This document shows, in pieces, positions 3,861 to 31,469 of a DNA stretch of 64,000 nt. Location: the sequence record ON287372.1; one strand, given 5' to 3'. How positions within the stretch are numbered: position 1 is the stretch's first letter; every line of letters begins with the position of its first letter. Position numbers and translations under genes: made by a program. The notes below the pieces were generated by a model. It saw only the letters and a list, made by a program, of their open reading frames with translations, did not search any database and was not told the DNA's origin.

Positions 3861-4457
3861 TTAGAAGACGGTTATCTCGTTGTTCTTAACGTCGTAACGA
3901 GCGCTAACCATGCTCACGTCACCGTCAGTTTTGTAAACGTTGATAACCCAGGTGTTTTTACCCGGTTTGCTATCGAACTCACCGTGGTCGCATTTGACGC
4001 CTTCCAAGAAGAAGGGTTCTTTCTGCTCGTTGATGATTTCACAAACGCGAGTTGCCATAGCGTCATCTTCATTGGCTGAATCAACCAGACCCAGGGCCAT
4101 AATTGCAACCAGCAGGCCGGCGATGTAGAAGATGAAACCTTTGAAGTTCTCGAAACCACCTTGGCGAGTACGGATGATACGGACAATGCCCCAGACGATA
4201 GGGGATAGCAACATATTCACCCAGACAGTGGTTGGTTTATAACCAGCCGCGGCAACGGATTCGTTATCGCAGTGCGCCAGGTTAACGTTGACAACCAGAA
4301 GAACTACATACGCAACCATATTGACTGTATCGTTGTCGGATACGGCGACGATCATGGTAAATACCGCAAAGGCTGCGATCATGTAATAGAAGAAACGGTT
4401 GGAAACAGCGAAGATGGATTTAGGTTCGTTCTTTTCAATACCGGTTACGATAGACAT
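3861..4457 (-). CDS. Membrane protein (about four TM segments plus a C-terminal soluble domain)
   Basis: Hydrophobic stretches FFYYMIAAFAVFTMIVAV, MVAYVVLLVVNV, WVNMLLSPIVWGIV, FIFYIAGLLVAIMALGLV; AAGGA RBS. Confidence 0.7.
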   Translation of the reverse strand: MSIVTGIEKNEPKSIFAVSNRFFYYMIAAFAVFTMIVAVSDNDTVNMVAYVVLLVVNVNLAHCDNESVAAAGYKPTTVWVNMLLSPIVWGIVRIIRTRQGGFENFKGFIFYIAGLLVAIMALGLVDSANEDDAMATRVCEIINEQKEPFFLEGVKCDHGEFDSKPGKNTWVINVYKTDGDVSMVSARYDVKNNEITVF

Positions 4458-11998: not shown

Positions 11999-14303
11999 AT
12001 TTAACTTTCCAGAATACAGGGAGCTTAACTTCAATCGATCCAGTGAAGCCGTTGATACGGAAACCAAACGAAGCAGTCTTGGTTGCGTTCCAAACTGTAG
12101 AGGTTAATGGTGGCGTGGAGATGAAGTCGTTAATACCTAACGGGGTGTTGGTTTCAGTCAATGCTTCGGACAGTAAGAAGTTACGGTCAGCAGTAGTCCC
12201 TAGTACCGGGTAGGTGGTTGTAATTGCGATGTTGTCATCGACTGAGTTTTTCTTACCCGTGATAACCGGGTCATCAAAACATCTAGCGATACCTGTAACC
12301 TTTACATCACCCGTAGCAATACCCTGTTTAACTGAGATCATCGTGTTGAACATGTCGCGAGGTAATACAGGTACACGTTCAGGGAATACAAGATCGATCT
12401 CGGCAGTATTGGCACTAGAGTTGATGATTAGAGTTTGAAGCCCATCATCACCTACCGCACCATAAGTCACAGTGACGGTACCATTACGCGTAATGAAACT
12501 AATCCCTGTGCTGGTTTCTGGGCTGGTTACCGTATTGCCTGCTGTGCCGGTGAACTTGTAGCGACGGTTGTCTGCCACGTTATAACTGATCAAGTAACAA
12601 GGATCGGTACGTGACATATTCACGATAACTGAACCAGTTACAGTAGTGTTGTCATTAGTCTTACCCCAACCAGTTAACGTACCATAAGTTTTAGTTCCTT
12701 TATTACGGAAGTTAATTGGGGAATTCTGGAAGCTAACGTAAAACGCACCCAGCTCCCCGTCAAGGATCTTACGTGGAGGACTGAATGGTTTAGTCGCATA
12801 GACAGCGTAAACTTGGCTATTGACGAAATAGAACTTCTGACCTGTACCCGTCCATTTGTCAGGTTGGTTAATCAGGTAACCGTCAAACCCTTCAAGGTGA
12901 CAGTTAGTTAATTTAACCCAACCGTGCGTGGTCGATTTACCCAGGAAGAATACATCGCCATTCTGGTAATCGAAGCTACAGTTATCGAAAGCAATCTCAA
13001 ACGCAAAGATATCCATGATAACGTTGTGAGATGTGGTGTCGCTGAAGGTACAGTTGTGGAATGCAATTTTCTCACCGGCATTACCGGAGCCGGTCCCTTT
13101 GAAGTAAAGGGAAGTTTCATTTCGTGCGCAGAATACACGATCGAAAAGGTTCAAGTAGCTATCAACACCGTCGTGGCGTAGACCGTATTTGAACCCTACG
13201 ATAGTCACGTTAGCGACCCGTACATCGCGACAGTTAACAAACCCTTTCGCTGTGTTACCCAACCAAACGCCGTGCATGGTAGAAACGCCAGCGCCTCGGC
13301 CTTTCACAATTACCTTACCAGGGCAATCGATAACAGTTACACCGTTAGATTGCGTGTTGTACCACTTGATAAGGTTAGCATCAGTCGCACCAGGGAATTG
13401 AGTGTTGTCAATGACGATACCGTCAATATCCCTTCCTGAGAAATCCAGGAGAGTAGTGCAAGTGAATTGCAAACCGATGAAGCTTGGGAGTTTAATCGTT
13501 TCATTCATGGTGTAACTAGCCAACCCAGTCGACGGATTAACACCAGGAACAATCAGATGGGAGAAAGTACCGAATGTACCAACGTTGGCAATTGCCAAGT
13601 TAACCATCGCACGGACACCTTTGTTAATTGTCTCCGCAAGGTTTTTCATTGCCGGTACGAAACCGAATACCATGACATTCACACCAGCTGAAGTATCCAG
13701 AACCCAGACCTTACCTTCATTGGTAGCGACACGCAATACTCCATCGATTGGGCCATCGTGGTAAGTATTGTCGTAGTAGTAGATCATGTTCAGTGCAGGA
13801 CCGCCTTCTACGGCGTGCTCTACAATAATGCTTTGCTGTGGCTTTGTAGGCTCCACTGAAGCTAAGTCTGCAATGTATGCAACCTTACCTAGGTCTTTAT
13901 AACCATCGCTCTTCAGGATCCCATTAATTCCTTTTGCAGAACGAGGGGTCGGATAACTAATTTGTTTACCGTCCTCGCCAATAACAGGTTCAGCAACCGA
14001 ACCCATTTTCAGATATTTAACTACGTTGACTTTACTCTCATCCTCAAAGACGTAAAACGCTTCGTTATCATTAGCGAAAGTAAGTCCGGTCGCAACATCT
14101 TTAAACGCATTATCGAAGTTGAAGCTACTTCTCAGATCATCAACTGTCGCGCCCTTAGTGATTGGTTTTCCGCCAGTGGTAGTATTGTTCAAAGGGATAA
14201 CATCAGTTTCACGTACGTTGTTGACTTTCCCTAATTCTGATATCTTAACTTGCTGTACCATTTCAGAATACCTTAGATTCGTTGTAGATTTCATAGGAAA
14301 CAA
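11997..14303 (-). CDS. Tailspike/depolymerase (beta-helix); likely start ATG 14261
   Basis: Anchor VKISELG...FDNAF; VNVMVFG cap; F.NC.F rung repeats; C-terminal carbohydrate-binding-like region. Confidence 0.8.
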   Translation of the reverse strand: MFPMKSTTNLRYSEMVQQVKISELGKVNNVRETDVIPLNNTTTGGKPITKGATVDDLRSSFNFDNAFKDVATGLTFANDNEAFYVFEDESKVNVVKYLKMGSVAEPVIGEDGKQISYPTPRSAKGINGILKSDGYKDLGKVAYIADLASVEPTKPQQSIIVEHAVEGGPALNMIYYYDNTYHDGPIDGVLRVATNEGKVWVLDTSAGVNVMVFGFVPAMKNLAETINKGVRAMVNLAIANVGTFGTFSHLIVPGVNPSTGLASYTMNETIKLPSFIGLQFTCTTLLDFSGRDIDGIVIDNTQFPGATDANLIKWYNTQSNGVTVIDCPGKVIVKGRGAGVSTMHGVWLGNTAKGFVNCRDVRVANVTIVGFKYGLRHDGVDSYLNLFDRVFCARNETSLYFKGTGSGNAGEKIAFHNCTFSDTTSHNVIMDIFAFEIAFDNCSFDYQNGDVFFLGKSTTHGWVKLTNCHLEGFDGYLINQPDKWTGTGQKFYFVNSQVYAVYATKPFSPPRKILDGELGAFYVSFQNSPINFRNKGTKTYGTLTGWGKTNDNTTVTGSVIVNMSRTDPCYLISYNVADNRRYKFTGTAGNTVTSPETSTGISFITRNGTVTVTYGAVGDDGLQTLIINSSANTAEIDLVFPERVPVLPRDMFNTMISVKQGIATGDVKVTGIARCFDDPVITGKKNSVDDNIAITTTYPVLGTTADRNFLLSEALTETNTPLGINDFISTPPLTSTVWNATKTASFGFRINGFTGSIEVKLPVFWKVK

Positions 14304-25194: not shown

Positions 25195-25262
25195 GTTTTG
25201 AAACCTTCCATCAAAAAGTAAGCTGGGTAGGGGCCCCTACCCAGCGGCTACGTAACTACTGA

Positions 25263-26414
25263 CTACTCTTCGTTGTACGCATTAAGCATCTGAGTCGCAA
25301 TGCTCTGGAGTAAGATGTTAACCATCCCAGACATCATTGCGGAGTTAACGATACGCGCGTTCACCGACTTGTACGAGAACTGGAGATCTACGTCCCATGG
25401 TTTGTCACCGGGGATCACCGGGCCGACCGTGCGGCACTTACCGGAGAACACACCTGAAACCACGGACTTTTTCTGGTTACCCACCACGATCTTGTCCCCG
25501 TCACCCATAGAGCGGTCATGGGTAATGTAGATACGAATCGCCATCATATCAATCTCAATAGAGAGACCGTCCAACCGAGTAGGCGCAAAGATCTGCCCGG
25601 TCTTAGCTTCCGTACCACCTAAGGCTTTAGAGAGCTTAGCTCGTTTGGCATCGTAATAGTCCGCAACTTTACGTAAGGAAGGGGACATGTCCTCTTTCTC
25701 ACCGAAGTAGACTACCTCGACTTTCTCGATATCTCCTACATACTTAGCACGCGGAGCTGGAGAACCCAAACGTTTCAGCGCTTCCAAAGTAGACTCATCG
25801 AACAAATCACTGGATGCAGAAACCTCGTCCTCGATAAACGCCAGGACGCTTTCGTTGTCTACATGCTCACCAACAGACACCAGATTACGGATACCTTGAT
25901 TAAAGTTAACCAGGAGTGTACGGGTGTGGGAAGTCGGTGTATGCAGACGCTTGGACAGTGACTCGGAGATGAGGCTAGCATCTTCGAAGGTTGAGTTGTT
26001 TTCCATCAGAGCGATGTTAGCCAACGTGCCGCTCTTCCAGAGAACTTGGGTAGGGTCACGCCAGTCCCTCTGGAAGAATCCAGGGTGGTAACTAACGATC
26101 TCACCTTCCACTACTCGTTTACCTACTTCGAGCTCAGATACTACGGCATGCGGTACTACGTGACCAGTAACCACACCGAAACGACGACCGAGCTGAATAC
26201 GCTCTTCACCTAAATTCTCATCGTCGTATTTTACGACCATGTAATCAGGGCCTTTCTCCGTGACTACGCCAGGGCCTTTAGCGGCTGTGGCGAAAGTATC
26301 ATCTACACGGTGCGCCATGATCTGTTCGTATCCAGTACGGATAGGAGAAACCATTGCGTCGTTAGATGCGATAACGTGGGATTGCTGAATGCTGATAAAG
26401 CTTACTCGCTTTGG
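25263..26414 (-). CDS. rpoB: Virion RNAP beta subunit, exon 2 (383 aa)
   Basis: Frame open from 26414: PKRVSFISIQQSHVIAS...FEDASLISE...GDKIVVGNQKKSVV, which are beta-subunit motifs. Confidence 0.9.
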   Translation of the reverse strand, partial: PKRVSFISIQQSHVIASNDAMVSPIRTGYEQIMAHRVDDTFATAAKGPGVVTEKGPDYMVVKYDDENLGEERIQLGRRFGVVTGHVVPHAVVSELEVGKRVVEGEIVSYHPGFFQRDWRDPTQVLWKSGTLANIALMENNSTFEDASLISESLSKRLHTPTSHTRTLLVNFNQGIRNLVSVGEHVDNESVLAFIEDEVSASSDLFDESTLEALKRLGSPAPRAKYVGDIEKVEVVYFGEKEDMSPSLRKVADYYDAKRAKLSKALGGTEAKTGQIFAPTRLDGLSIEIDMMAIRIYITHDRSMGDGDKIVVGNQKKSVVSGVFSGKCRTVGPVIPGDKPWDVDLQFSYKSVNARIVNSAMMSGMVNILLQSIATQMLNAYNEE

Positions 26415-28097
26415 CGGAAATCTTCACTTAGGTTCGTTATTCCTAAGCCTGCTAATGCAGCTCTGAGCTTTCCTCAGATGTCGAGACTATATCACTACCC
26501 TCTTTACAAGGGTACTTCCTGTTTCGGCTGTAAACTCGTTACAGGCGTTTTCACGCACCACTTGGCCCTACTCGCCCGACGGCGATAGTCGTTGAACGTT
26601 CTCCGTGGTATCCTAAGATACGGTAGGAGCTTCGCTGCGAAAGATCGGGTTGGTTACCGAACTCGATTCCCCATTGTACATCCACACACTTTTTAGAGCA
26701 TTCACGTTTGTCCTTTCGAACTCCGTTGTAGCAGTGTGGCTTTAGTGGGTTCCCGCAATTAAGGAAGTTATTCGACTGAGATTACTCCCAGAAGCGACCC
26801 ATATTTTAGTCATTGGAAAGATAACGCCAGCAGGTACCGTCCGGATAGACTTTCTCTCCGTTGGTTTTTAACCGCCAGTTTGCGGTGGTAGTCCCGATGT
26901 TGTAAACTCGGCACGCCTCTGCTGCGCTTAAGAAGGTGGATTCAGTACCGTCACGATTAGTGACTACAACAACCTTTTTGGCTCGTGAATTCTTCGCTAG
27001 TTCCTTAGCTATTGATTCCACATGACGCCATTTAGGCTCAGTTAAACCACGATGAATCAAATACCGACTACCTTTGATATCTGAGATGTTCTTCGATAAC
27101 CAAAGCGTTACGGTAGGTATAGAGATTCCCAGAACGTTAGCCATTTCTGTTTGGCTGTTGAACTCAAACGTTTCATTGGCGTTTAGGTCACGAACAAAGA
27201 TCTTATTCGCTTGCCCATGTTTGACCAGTCCGGATTTCTCCTCGTTAGTCAATTCTCTCCAAGGAGAGTTATCGCCTTTGTATTTGTATTGTTTCATCTC
27301 TGGATAGACACGTTGTTTCGTATCTTTCAATCTCCAAGCGATTGCATCTTTAGACAACCCGATATGGTTAGCGTATTGGGACATGGAAAGCCACTCGGTG
27401 ACTTCTCCGGTAAAGACATCTCTAACTAAGATGATTCTACCTGTCTCATTGTAGACCGGTTCACTATCGGAGATTACTCTCCAAGGCGTTGGGTCGTTTG
27501 CTAACTTAATCAGGTATTCTCCACGGAAGAAAGGTTGATCGAGAGAAAGAATTCGATCAAGTCTCTTAGGGGATATTCCAAGGTATTCCGATGCTGCACG
27601 AGCAGAAGGGAAATCGAGCTCTTCTTTAGTGTTAACCAAAAAGACCTTTACTTTCTTTCTGGGGGCGACCGTAAAGTCAACCCGTTTAGCGCCGATGGAA
27701 ATGGCGTGCCGATTGTTCTCTAAAACCGTACACCACTCTAGATTACTTAGCTCGTCGTGACCGTGGATGTTGTCTTTGTGATTTATCACCAACTCGCGGT
27801 AGTTGTCAGGTCTATCTGACATTGCTATCATCATCAATCGGTAATGTTGATAGAGTACTCGTTTACCTGAGTCAGTTACTACTGAGTTGTACCGATATCC
27901 TTTCTTGTCTCGATAAACGGGGATTTCAACTCCTCGCTTTAAATCGAGAACCTTACCTTCTTCATTGACCGCATATCGAGAGAACCCTTCGATCAAGTAA
28001 AAACCTGCTACGGAGGATTCTGTCCACGGTGATATTGTCTTTTCCATAATAGCATTCCGAATTATATCGTCATACTATTGAACTAAAATAAATATTG
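26415..28097 (-). mobile_element. Group I intron (IA-like), 1683 nt, in the virion RNAP beta gene
   Basis: 5' exon ends in U (GAT at 28100-28098) and the intron ends in G (26415). Splicing gives YDD|PKRV in frame. Conserved elements on the minus strand: AATTGCGGGAA (P), TCGCAGCGAAG (Q), GTTCAACGACTA (R), GATATAGTCT (S). IGS at 26795-26807. Confidence 0.92.
26806..28047 (-). CDS. Intron-encoded HNH homing endonuclease (I-HmuI-like, NUMOD4/HNH plus four NUMOD1-like repeats)
   Basis: IEGFSRYAVNEEGKV; VINHKDNIHGHDELSNLEWCTVLENNRH; repeats of the form V...F.S..EA...LG. Confidence 0.9.
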   Translation of the reverse strand: MEKTISPWTESSVAGFYLIEGFSRYAVNEEGKVLDLKRGVEIPVYRDKKGYRYNSVVTDSGKRVLYQHYRLMMIAMSDRPDNYRELVINHKDNIHGHDELSNLEWCTVLENNRHAISIGAKRVDFTVAPRKKVKVFLVNTKEELDFPSARAASEYLGISPKRLDRILSLDQPFFRGEYLIKLANDPTPWRVISDSEPVYNETGRIILVRDVFTGEVTEWLSMSQYANHIGLSKDAIAWRLKDTKQRVYPEMKQYKYKGDNSPWRELTNEEKSGLVKHGQANKIFVRDLNANETFEFNSQTEMANVLGISIPTVTLWLSKNISDIKGSRYLIHRGLTEPKWRHVESIAKELAKNSRAKKVVVVTNRDGTESTFLSAAEACRVYNIGTTTANWRLKTNGEKVYPDGTCWRYLSND

Positions 28098-31000
28098 ATC
28101 GTCATACGTGGCGAATGGAGCTACCAACGCAGATGTACTCAGCAAGTTACCTACCCCTTTCTTCGGATCTGGGTCTACAGTCGGAACTGCAGTACCACGA
28201 AGAGAAGTCAGGTTTGGGTTAGCCGTAAGGAATGTGTTAATCCCTACGTCGCCGTTATCCACAGATGCTTCTGCACGAATACCGATATCGGATTCATGGA
28301 AGGCGCGAGTACGACGAACCATGGCTCGTTTGGAACGACCACCTGTACCGGCATAGGTTACGTTTTCTTTTTCTTTCAGGTTGTGGATCGGGTTAGAATC
28401 CTCAACGATTGCCACTGACGGATCCTTCTGAATAGAAGCAAGGACTTCGTAAGGGGAGATGTCTACTGTAGCACGAGAGCTAACAGGTTGACCTGAATAG
28501 ATGCGTACTGCGCCAGACAGAGCACGATAGACTGCGCCAGGCATACGCTCGTAACCACGGATCAAGGAACCGCCAGAAGCGATATCACTTGGGTAGTTAT
28601 CCGTTACCAGATAGAATGCTGCTTTGATGAACAAGTCATTGAGTTCCTGCGGCTCATTCATTTCCTTCAACACGTCAATTGCAATCGGGTCAAGGAACAG
28701 TGCATTCAGGTTGTCAATCTCACGTACGTAGCGAGCAGTTAACCCAGCCATGCCAAAGAGCATGTTGTAGGTATCTGGATTGTCCAGCTCTTGTACGGAG
28801 AAGCCACGGAAGTATTTCTTCCAACGGAGTAACGAGGCCCAGATCAAACTGGAGTTACCGCCGTGGACTGGGAACCGCCAGATTTCGTCAGCGAAGACGA
28901 TCTCAAACGTACCCGGTACATGTTCAACACGAGTGCCTTTAACACGACGCTCAGGCTTCACTTCCAATTTGTTCAGTAGCTGAGTAATACCCATGTGATA
29001 CATGAGGATTGCAGCCATTGGAACTTCTTCGCCCATGATCTTAACGATCACTTGCTCAACTGGAAGTTTCTCATCAGGAACATTCAACATGGCGTTGATT
29101 GAACCTACCGCTTTACCGTCACCGGTAAACAGCGCACCTTCATTATTCATGAAGTAGAACTCTTTACCTTTACGTCCGACTGGAATCCAACCTTTGGCAG
29201 CAGATGCCTTCACTACATCTTCAGTGAAGTTTTTCGCCAGGCTAGAATAGTCGAACATGAATTGAATACCGTTCAGGATAAAGGAAACGAATTCCTTAGC
29301 AATCGCAGAGTAAGTACGGGGAACGTCTTGGTCTTCTGCGAAAGTACTACCCAGAACTAATTCGGTGACCAACGGTTCGGCCATTTGACTCGCGCGGGTG
29401 ATGATATCGACCAGGGTACTACCGAGGTCTTCACTAGCACGAGATGAACGCTCTACAAAGAGCTTACCGTAATACGTCGACAGAGCAACGATGCTCGGTG
29501 AGATCTTACGGATAGGTTTATCGAACTTAAGCTTACGCATGAAGTACTTGGTACCGTTCACGCGATACTTACCGTTCTTATCCACTGCTGGCAATTGGAA
29601 CCGAATAGTAGAAGGACTTCCGTATACCGGAACGACCTTGATCGTGTAGTCGTACAGATCGTTCAATGCATCCGACTTCTTCTCGACCTTGTATTCAGTA
29701 ATCGCCAGACCTGCTTTCTGAAGGTTAATGACCATATTGGCCACATCCTTCTGGAACACTTTGTTGATGTAATCGCTATCGTAGTTCAGCAGGGTGGATT
29801 TCAACATCGACTTATCGACGACGTGCGGGATGTCCGGAATCTCTTTCGCTTTGAAATCCCACAGAGTCTCTGGAGGGATCTTCATGAAGTCTTCCAGAGT
29901 ACCCTCACCAAACGGAGCCTTAATCGTTTTAAAGCTGTTAGCGAGACGTACGTGGCGTTTAAACTCGTTACCTGAGATTAATCCTTTACTCAGGAGATCA
30001 CGAGAACGCTCTTCCACCGGTTTAATCAGCGGATCGCTGGTATCGATGATTTCTTCCGGGGCTTTCTCAGGAGTTGGCTGAGTAACTACCTTGGCAGTTT
30101 CTTCTTCCTGGAAAGTAGTGGTCGCCGTTACATCGCTGGATTGGACGGTAGACTCGTTACGCTTAGTCGCTAAGATCTCGCGAGGAGTTCTCACAACGCG
30201 TTGGGCGCTACGGCGCAGCCGAGCAATGTCACTCTCGCCTTTATCGCCTACCGACACGTCGACTTCTGGTTCACCTGGTTGTTGCTCAGGAACCTTAACA
30301 TCGACGACCTCAGCATTCCCCTCTTCGTCAACCTCTTCTTCCACTGTCACTTTATCAGAGACAGAGGTAGCGGTAACGATACTCTGAAGGTAACGGTTCA
30401 TGGTTTGCGACATGGAACCAAACCCGACGCCTTTATCGTTCTCTTCCGACTTCACCCACAAATCGAGCTTATCGAAAGACACCATGCTGAACTTACCGTT
30501 ACGCATGATAACCAGGTTAAGGTTCTTCAGTGCGGAACTTGGGATTTCTCCCAGGATAGATTCAGCTCGGTTATCCGACATCCATTTCCAGAAGTCAGAC
30601 AGGAACAATGAAACATCATCTTGGAAATAACCCAGACGAATACGGTTCATCGCTTCGTTGGAAACTACCGGAATATCGTCACCCATCGAGATACTGCCAT
30701 CATCGAAGGATTCGAACGACAGATCTTCACTCCAGCCCAGAGAACTTTCATCGAAAGCTTCGTTAGAGAACTGGACGCCTTGACCTTCCATGATACCAGG
30801 GTAGAGGTTATCGTAATACGACCCTACTGTACCGCTGGTCTGGCTATCGACATTGCTCTGCATGTTAGTGCGGGCATCACCGATAACGTTAAAGGCTTCT
30901 ACAGACACGTTCAGATATTGACGGGACGGTAATACATCCGGGAGATTAATGAACAGGAACTGTGGGCGGGCAGATGTTTCGCCAAAGTACTTAACGCGAC

Positions 31001-31469
31001 TTGCGAAAGTCTTCATCAAGTTTTGGAAACGGAACCAACGTGCCATAGGGACAGGTTGATAACGCCACTGCATTGGGATTAACGAGTAGTTAACCACGAT
31101 CGCTGTTTGACGATCATCCAATGCCCGTGCAATGTCTGTAACGCGACGATAGCGCCGGTTACGAATCAGCCACTGGCGCTTCAGGTTTTCTACGTTAAAG
31201 GCGCCACGACGACGTGGGGCACCTTCATGGGCGGTCATGTCCGTTACCTGGTCGATGTAAGGACGTAGTCGTTCGTTAATAATCGGGAAGAACTGATCGT
31301 TAGGACCTAAGTCAGAAACAGACTGGGGTAAGTAGTGAACGATCGCTCCACGAGGGAGTATGAAGTTTTCCAGATTAAACAACCTCGGGGTGGTTAGCCC
31401 CGAAGTAGAACGTACGCCGAACCGCTGATACAATTCGGAATAGGTAATGTTACTCATTGTCAGAGACAC
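28098..31469 (-). CDS. rpoB: Virion RNAP beta subunit, exon 1 (phiKZ gp178-like); 1507 aa when spliced
   Basis: VTYAGTGGRS, FHESDIGIRAEASVDNGDVGIN and YRVNGTKYFMR motifs. The unspliced ORF ends with 4 intron-derived codons (QYLF). Confidence 0.9.

Follow-up and report, generated by a model that had tools for sequence, protein, structure and literature searches.

A probable mobile IA-type group I intron with an I-HmuI-like HNH gene in the virion RNA polymerase beta gene of Serratia phage Totoro

The RNA polymerase beta locus and the intron boundaries

We analysed a 64-kb stretch of DNA (64,000 nt, hereafter the window) from the 278.8-kb record ON287372.1 of Serratia phage vB_SmaS-Totoro, a member of the genus Moabitevirus in the Chimalliviridae, the nucleus-forming jumbo phages. 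The window matched this record at 100% identity. The GenBank labels at the locus of interest are "putative RNA polymerase beta subunit", "HNH endonuclease" and again "putative RNA polymerase beta subunit", and no intron is annotated. Our analysis indicates that positions 28097 to 26415 are very probably a mobile IA-type group I intron with an I-HmuI-like HNH gene, inserted in the beta gene of the virion RNA polymerase (vRNAP). The features of the locus, all of which, like those given further below, lie on the minus strand of the window, are as follows.

28098..31469, minus strand: exon 1 of the vRNAP beta gene (list of open reading frames (ORFs); GenBank coding sequence (CDS) TOTORO_02210; PHROG 3148; colinearity with phage Moabite)
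26415..28097, minus strand: probable group I intron, IA-type, 1683 nt (gap against the intron-less Moabite; Rfam RF00028; homologues at the same site)
26806..28047, minus strand: HNH homing endonuclease ORF, 413 aa, in the P1 loop (PHROG 59; PDB 1U3E; Pfam NUMOD1)
25263..26414, minus strand: exon 2 of the vRNAP beta gene, 383 codons plus stop (PHROG 3148; translation; 40% identity to PhiPA3 gp209)
25222..25245, minus strand: terminator-like hairpin directly after the beta gene (terminator scan; the equivalent position is an annotated terminator in Moabite)

We searched the exon 1 and exon 2 proteins separately. The former covered positions 2 to 1050 of PHROG 3148 (RNA polymerase beta subunit; E=0) and the latter positions 1051 to 1422, so that the two matches abutted exactly at 1050/1051. 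Alignment of the uninterrupted Moabite gene with Totoro exon 1 plus exon 2 was gapless, with a single 1683-nt insertion between Moabite nucleotides 3372 and 3373, and the joined product reads ...YDD/PKRVSF... (here and below, a slash within a sequence marks the junction). The PHROG matches and the colinearity with Moabite support the host gene named in the first-pass annotation, vRNAP beta, although the label "virion" is given here only by homology to PhiKZ gp178 and EL gp186. The same annotation had assigned 1507 aa to the subunit. This length holds for the first possible start, GTG at 31469, whereas the annotated ATG at 31457, 12 nt downstream and also used in the Moabite record, gives 1503 aa.

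The 5′ boundary, ...ACG TAT GAC GAT/CAATATTTATTTTAG..., lies at 28098/28097; the intron begins CAATATTT, with C28097 as its first base after U28098. The 3′ boundary, ...GAAGATTTCCG/CCA AAG CGA..., lies at 26415/26414; the intron ends ...TTTCCG with the terminal G (omega-G) at G26415, and exon 2 opens CCA AAG CGA, translated PKRVSFISIQQ.... Because a C is present on both sides, the junction could be shifted by one base; the positions given are those at which U precedes the 5′ splice site and G ends the intron, as the group I rule requires. The intron limits and the GAT/CCA junction proposed in the first-pass annotation are those observed in the gapless alignment and in the abutting profile positions. 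In the unspliced RNA, the exon 1 frame would continue for four further codons to a TAG at 28085-28083 inside the insert. In a search of solved structures, the joined Moabite sequence ...PFATYDD/PKRVSFISIQQ aligned with ...PFLEHDD/ANRALMGSNMQ of Thermus beta, which is the conserved HDD motif. The insertion follows directly on two conserved aspartates (D674/D675 in Escherichia coli RpoB), and the junction is within the conserved HDD/ANR segment, next to the active centre.

Ribozyme core, P1 and the HNH gene

An Rfam search in E-value mode gave one match to RF00028 (group I intron) in the 64-kb window, at 26833-26461, with 49.0 bits and an E-value of 6e-11 locally and 2e-9 window-wide. The same site holds homologous introns in Kodama, Haymo, Yaphecito, PhiPA3 and C-ZP2022. 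The scores of same-site homologues were 82.6 bits for Haymo, 67.8 for PhiPA3 and 63.2, 59.7 and 86.7 for the loci L013, L029 and L022, respectively. The following elements were drawn, all on the minus strand.

26415..26790: ribozyme core (hand-drawn helices, all standard pairs; minimum free energy (MFE) fold; covariation)
26790-86/26781-77: P2, with a GUAA loop
26768-62/26520-14: P3
26757-52/26641-36: P4
26749-46/26673-70: P5
26635-34/26597-96: P6, plus P6a and P6b
26592 and 26590-86/26489-84: P7, with C26591 bulged
26584-81/26576-73: P7.1
26567-26526: P7.2, branched
26513-08/26502-26497: P8
26478-73/26467-62: P9
26460-57/26452-49: P9.1
26447-42/26432-27: P9.2
28090..28101: P1 5′ strand, CGAU/CAAUAUUU, the last four exon and first eight intron bases (RNAduplex; covariation)
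26795..26806: P1 3′ strand, the internal guide sequence (IGS), AAAUAUGGGUCG (RNAduplex; sequence)

The bulged base of P7 adjoins a G-C pair, as is usual for group I introns, and three core strings match the consensus of the model, namely AAUUGCGGGAA (P3/J3-4/P4), GUUCAACGACUA (J6/7-P7) and GAUAUAGUCU (J8/7-P7′). An unconstrained MFE fold recovered most of the hand-drawn helices (z = -2.3). When the Totoro intron was aligned with five homologous introns, compensatory changes were observed in P2, P3, P4, P6a, P8 and P9, and P7 was invariant. P7.1 and P7.2 lie between P7 and P3′, and the intron is therefore IA-type; by this criterion the assignment extends to IA, with IA1 and IA2 undivided. The helices and the covariation, together with an Rfam score just below the gathering cut-off, support the group I assignment of the first-pass annotation, which had proposed Infernal with group I models as a check, and the extent of the Rfam match together with the helix positions places the catalytic core wholly 3′ of the ORF, as that annotation had it. 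A sigma-70 promoter scan within the intron gave fewer promoter-like sites than shuffled sequences and was uninformative, and a terminator scan of the same interval found no minus-strand terminator.

P1 (28101-28090/26806-26795) forms 11 of 12 pairs in RNAduplex, with one A.G mismatch and the U28098.G26798 wobble at the splice site. By our own arithmetic, the chance of such a P1 in one fixed register is ~1.6e-4 (pairing probability of 0.375 per position). The two strands are separated by 1291 nt. Haymo has exon UGAU with IGS GUCA, compared to CGAU with GUCG in Totoro, the exon change being synonymous, and C-ZP2022 has GACGAU with GUCGUC. The RNAduplex pairing and these covariations bear out the P1 with a U-G wobble that had been drawn earlier. 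Reading from the sequence, a homology-guided P1 of PhiPA3 pairs GAU/UGU with ACAGUC and has the wobble correctly placed; a stronger PhiPA3 pairing chosen by RNAduplex was set aside as non-homologous. Also from the sequence, a P10 is possible between CCA at the start of exon 2 (26414-26412) and the IGS bases UGG (26801-26799). Infernal itself paired the Totoro IGS with the 3′ end of the ORF (~26829-26821). We regard this as an alignment artefact and not as a competing helix; Infernal mis-aligns P1 because its model cannot span the 1.29-kb insertion in the P1 loop (L1). The local fold of that stretch was no better than shuffled sequence in Totoro, Kodama or Haymo (z of +1.2, 0.0 and -0.2, respectively).

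The 413-aa protein matched PHROG 59 (HNH endonuclease) at 1.4e-26 and I-HmuI (PDB 1U3E) at 1.2e-7. Pfam NUMOD1 scored 34.2 bits (cut-off 22.8), and the I-HmuI_NUMOD-like and HTH models remained below their cut-offs. In the motif ...INH90KD...N102LEW...N111..H114A, the residues N89-H90, N102, N111 and H114 were invariant in six relatives, and His90 (codon 27780-27778) aligned with the catalytic H82 of PhiPA3 gp210. Totoro and Kodama differ in this ORF by 55 synonymous and 12 non-synonymous codon differences. The resulting pN/pS of 0.068 indicates purifying selection, and the ORF is therefore a maintained gene. Compared to PhiPA3 gp210 and the Haymo protein, the Totoro protein has an extra insertion of ~75 aa with a NUMOD1 repeat.

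The TAA that closes the ORF (26808-26806) shares one base with the 3′ strand of P1. The 424-nt ORF-less intron of Yaphecito and BUCT660 corresponds to nucleotides 1-22 plus 1288-1515 of the Totoro intron at ~95% identity, and in Yaphecito Infernal aligns the first helix (P1) to exon CGAU/CAA with GGGUCG across a short loop. This layout places the 1265-nt block with the HNH gene in L1. Thus the earlier proposal that the whole HNH ORF sits in the P1 loop, with its stop overlapping the IGS strand, is shown to be right by the Yaphecito allele and the TAA position. In addition, the last ten bases of exon 1 (GTATGACGAT on the RNA strand; 28098-28107) are repeated exactly 32 nt downstream in the intron (28066-28075), adjoining the start of the ORF-bearing block relative to the ORF-less allele. 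This repeat might be a footprint of the entry of an endonuclease cassette into L1, or might be due to chance; five exact repeats of 10-11 nt were found in the region, compared to ~1.5 expected.

Mobility, alleles of the site and competing explanations

The Totoro and Kodama introns are 94.3% identical, whereas identity is 77.5% in exon 1 and 85.7% in exon 2, and synonymous sites have diverged by 0.21 in the HNH gene as opposed to 0.49-0.63 in the exons. The intron is far less diverged than the exons, and its common ancestor is therefore more recent than that of the host gene. Within Moabitevirus, the insertion point, which we call the DD site, occurs in four states.

Moabite: empty
Yaphecito and BUCT660: 424-nt ORF-less intron
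Haymo, 2050HW and vB_ParM-25: 1371-nt intron, with a 328-aa HNH protein 33% identical to that of Totoro
Totoro and Kodama: the intron described here, with the 413-aa HNH protein in Totoro

The Haymo-type intron shares with that of Totoro the site, the ORF-in-L1 layout and the intron family, and its core is 67.8% identical. However, its core is more compact and scores higher in Rfam, and its endonuclease is shorter. It represents a lineage of its own within the family and not a recent copy.

The ORF-less allele (L003:3873-4296 in Yaphecito, with an identical stretch, L031, in BUCT660) ends ...GACUAGA/CCAAAG by colinearity with Moabite. Its colinear last base is thus A where a group I intron should have G, and P7 retains its G-C binding pair. 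P3 and P8 are preserved by compensatory changes, and the fold therefore still seems to be under selection. From an in-frame AUG 13 codons upstream, annotated as the start of gp14, the frame runs stop-free into exon 2 (MPQVNLANSLTTR-PKRVSF...). The sequence of this allele might represent an intron turning into a permanent gene split. The 3′ half of the Yaphecito intron (P7.1 to P7′; L003:4110-4225) is unlike the Totoro DD-site intron but shares 77% identity with a second group I intron of Totoro, which lies outside the window (L032:2501-2615, equal to 13148-13262 of the Totoro record). That second intron (61.5 bits in Rfam, L032:2340-2634) interrupts the RNAP beta′ gene TOTORO_00140 and has an HNH gene, TOTORO_00130, downstream of its core. 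The mosaic suggests recombination between introns of different RNAP genes.

From the boundaries, fold, covariation, homology and selection on the ORF, all observed directly, we infer the following course of events. One pre-mRNA would cover the whole beta gene, and the core at the 3′ end of the intron would fold. The IGS at 26806-26795 would reach back ~1.29 kb to the end of exon 1 to make P1, and an external guanosine would attack after U28098. The terminal G26415 would then take the same G-binding site in P7, with P10 (CCA/UGG) aligning exon 2, and exon ligation would yield ...YDD-PKRVSF... in a continuous beta subunit of ~1503 aa. The HNH protein would most likely nick intron-less alleles such as that of Moabite, GTATGACGAT/CCGAAGCG, in co-infection, leading to intron homing. 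The endonuclease could also handicap intron-less competitors, as shown for the homologous PhiPA3 gp210.

Several points weigh against this reading. RF00028 has a gathering cut-off of 50 bits, from which Totoro is 1 bit short, and a default gathering scan of the window reports nothing. P1 contains the A.G mismatch, has only four exon base pairs and must form across 1.29 kb. The Pfam scan of the exon proteins found no RNAP domain (PHROGs and the PDB searches did match), and no Pfam HNH model matched the 413-aa ORF. The GenBank record of Totoro contains two separate beta CDSs. No clear co-conversion tract was found within 150-300 nt of the flanking exons between Totoro and Kodama. Finally, splicing itself, as well as nicking, homing and a competitive effect, is for Totoro something that we infer.

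The negative HNH and co-conversion results are also what would be seen if the intron splices but its HNH protein is inactive or has been retargeted to a maturase-like or regulatory role, with vertical inheritance only, and the ~75-aa NUMOD1-containing insertion could be read in the same way. However, the catalytic histidine and the N/H motif residues are conserved, the protein matches I-HmuI and the ORF is under strong purifying selection. Furthermore, the intron is far less diverged than the exons between Totoro and Kodama, and the site is polymorphic for presence and absence within the genus. We therefore consider an immobile intron to be quite improbable. A second alternative is that beta is made as two polypeptides, with a free-standing HNH gene between their genes and the ribozyme-like sequence as an inactive relic. 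The two GenBank beta CDSs and the HNH gene would be consistent with this, RNAP subunits are often split in this phage family (for example, 201phi2-1 gp273/274, mentioned in the PhiPA3 annotation), and the Yaphecito/BUCT660 allele has its in-frame AUG and no G at the colinear 3′ end. In Totoro, however, an in-frame UGA (26426-26424) lies inside the intron four codons before exon 2, and the first in-frame AUG of exon 2 is at 26354, 20 codons in, so that a polypeptide made separately would be without the conserved PKRVSFISIQQSHVIASNDA segment. The cut would also break the conserved HDD/ANR motif. In addition, all ribozyme elements are intact, the helices covary among the homologues and the boundaries fit the U...G rule exactly. 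Such a split gene is highly improbable in our view. An intein was ruled out by the stop four codons into the insert, and a group II intron by the lack of group II Rfam matches and by an ORF that is an HNH gene and not a reverse transcriptase.

For a spliced Totoro intron, the possible competition between HNH translation and P1 formation suggested in the first-pass annotation is mechanically reasonable, because a ribosome terminating at 26808-26806 would cover the IGS. In the chimallivirus family, transcription takes place in a ribosome-free phage nucleus, uncoupled from translation, and splicing could therefore finish before ribosomes meet the RNA, in which case the conflict may never arise for nascent RNA. 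This escape from the conflict in the phage nucleus is speculation. With coupled transcription and translation, ribosomes would pull such a P1 helix apart; with nuclear splicing, the ORF may stay in L1 even where it touches or overlaps the IGS (by 1 nt in Totoro; P1′ and P2 in PhiPA3). It seems unlikely that the phage nucleus accounts for the ORF-in-L1 layout, whether by adaptation or through a relaxed constraint. If it did, the endonuclease would be translated only from exported excised intron or unspliced RNA.

Comparison with known introns

The Totoro intron is a fresh example of a known, recently characterised type of intron. It corrects the Totoro annotation, in which two "beta subunit" genes and an HNH gene would be replaced by one spliced gene of ~1503 aa for an essential virion enzyme. 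The DD site, after the Asp pair of the HDD motif of RNAP beta, is a recurrent homing site across the Chimalliviridae, occupied in Serratia, Pectobacterium, Pseudomonas and Vibrio phages and in metagenomic loci. Furthermore, the alleles found in Moabitevirus form a natural series on a single host species: empty, ORF-less and two diverged HNH introns. The series suits tests of homing and of the "intron endonuclease as a weapon" idea set up for PhiPA3/PhiKZ, and could show how a ribozyme with a P1 spanning 1.3 kb folds where transcription and translation are separate. The most unusual features, namely an ORF-less allele with A as its colinear last base and a 3′ half of mosaic origin, are found in relatives and not in the window.

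Among 22 chimallivirus loci from IMG/VR, which include 2050HW and PhiPA3 themselves, seven were interrupted at or beside the DD site, and six of these seven have an RF00028 match. Junctions at the DD site elsewhere read HDD/AKR in the Vibrio phage C-ZP2022, which has the same intron/ORF arrangement, TDD/PKR in L013 and NDD/GKR in L030. One locus (L022, IMG/VR 3300042566_001512) contains four RF00028 matches of 47-102 bits in one gene (457-892, 2322-2613, 2661-2947 and 3891-4133), two of which are tandem introns, separated by ~47 nt, at the DD site and a few codons further downstream. Another (L017:1614-3001, IMG/VR 3300031933_000215) has a ~1.4-kb insertion, which contains an HNH ORF of this family (347 aa), ~6 codons downstream of the DD site (...HDDPKRIN/...FVAIQQ), and gave no RF00028 match at E <= 0.001. 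This may be another homing site, occupied by an element that has diverged or is of a different kind. In Goslar (L007, 2186-4079) and EL (L033, gp184-gp186), an RNAP beta-like gene is likewise split by related HNH genes, after an N-terminal piece of ~480-500 aa as located within those genes themselves. The Goslar insertion carries an Intron_gpI annotation and scored 67.7 bits here, and its ORF is again upstream of the core. Chimallivirus RNAP beta genes look like an intron hot spot. In the literature searched, we found no mention of an intron in 2050HW-like phages, and a search on ORFs in the P1 loop found nothing useful.

The intron was compared with that of PhiPA3, in which gp210 is the HNH endonuclease encoded by an intron that interrupts vRNAP beta (gp211/gp209; Birkholz et al., Science 2024, PMC11620839). 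This enzyme nicks both the site without the intron and the gp178 allele of PhiKZ and confers a competitive advantage on PhiPA3, and its H82R mutant is inactive (PMC11620839). The PhiPA3 intron interrupts the same gene (the PhiKZ gp178 homologue) at the same point after the two conserved aspartates, NDD/MKRVGFISIQQ compared to YDD/PKRVSFISIQQ in Totoro. The insertion points coincide, and the Totoro site is therefore not new, which answers a question that the first-pass annotation had left open. Outside the genus, gp210 is the best match to the Totoro HNH protein (29% identity over 95% of the length). The ORF of both introns follows the 5′ splice site and precedes the core, and the homology of the cores extends to the ...AACGAAC...CUGAAGAU...G tail. 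However, the two phages differ in host genus and virus genus, and the Totoro ORF is 83 aa longer, with the extra NUMOD1-containing insertion. The Totoro core has an extra P5c and the branched P7.2 and scores lower in Rfam. The PhiPA3 ORF runs through the P1 3′ strand and P2, as opposed to the one-base overlap in Totoro. Nicking and interference were demonstrated for PhiPA3, whereas Totoro is known here from its sequence alone.

I-HmuI from the DNA polymerase intron of SPO1 resembles the Totoro protein as an HNH nicking endonuclease of a phage group I intron with NUMOD-type DNA-binding repeats. However, its host gene is different and it is much shorter, with 174 aa. The I-HmuI ORF occupies a different peripheral loop in the SPO1 intron. 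RNAP genes of jumbo phages can carry introns, and those of the Bacillus jumbo phage AR9, which is not a chimallivirus, are reportedly split by them. The IA2 introns in td, nrdB and sunY of T4 have IA-type cores with P7.1 and P7.2 between P7 and P3′, and they interrupt essential genes at conserved sites. The ORFs of the T4 introns belong to other endonuclease families and lie in the P6 or P9 loops.

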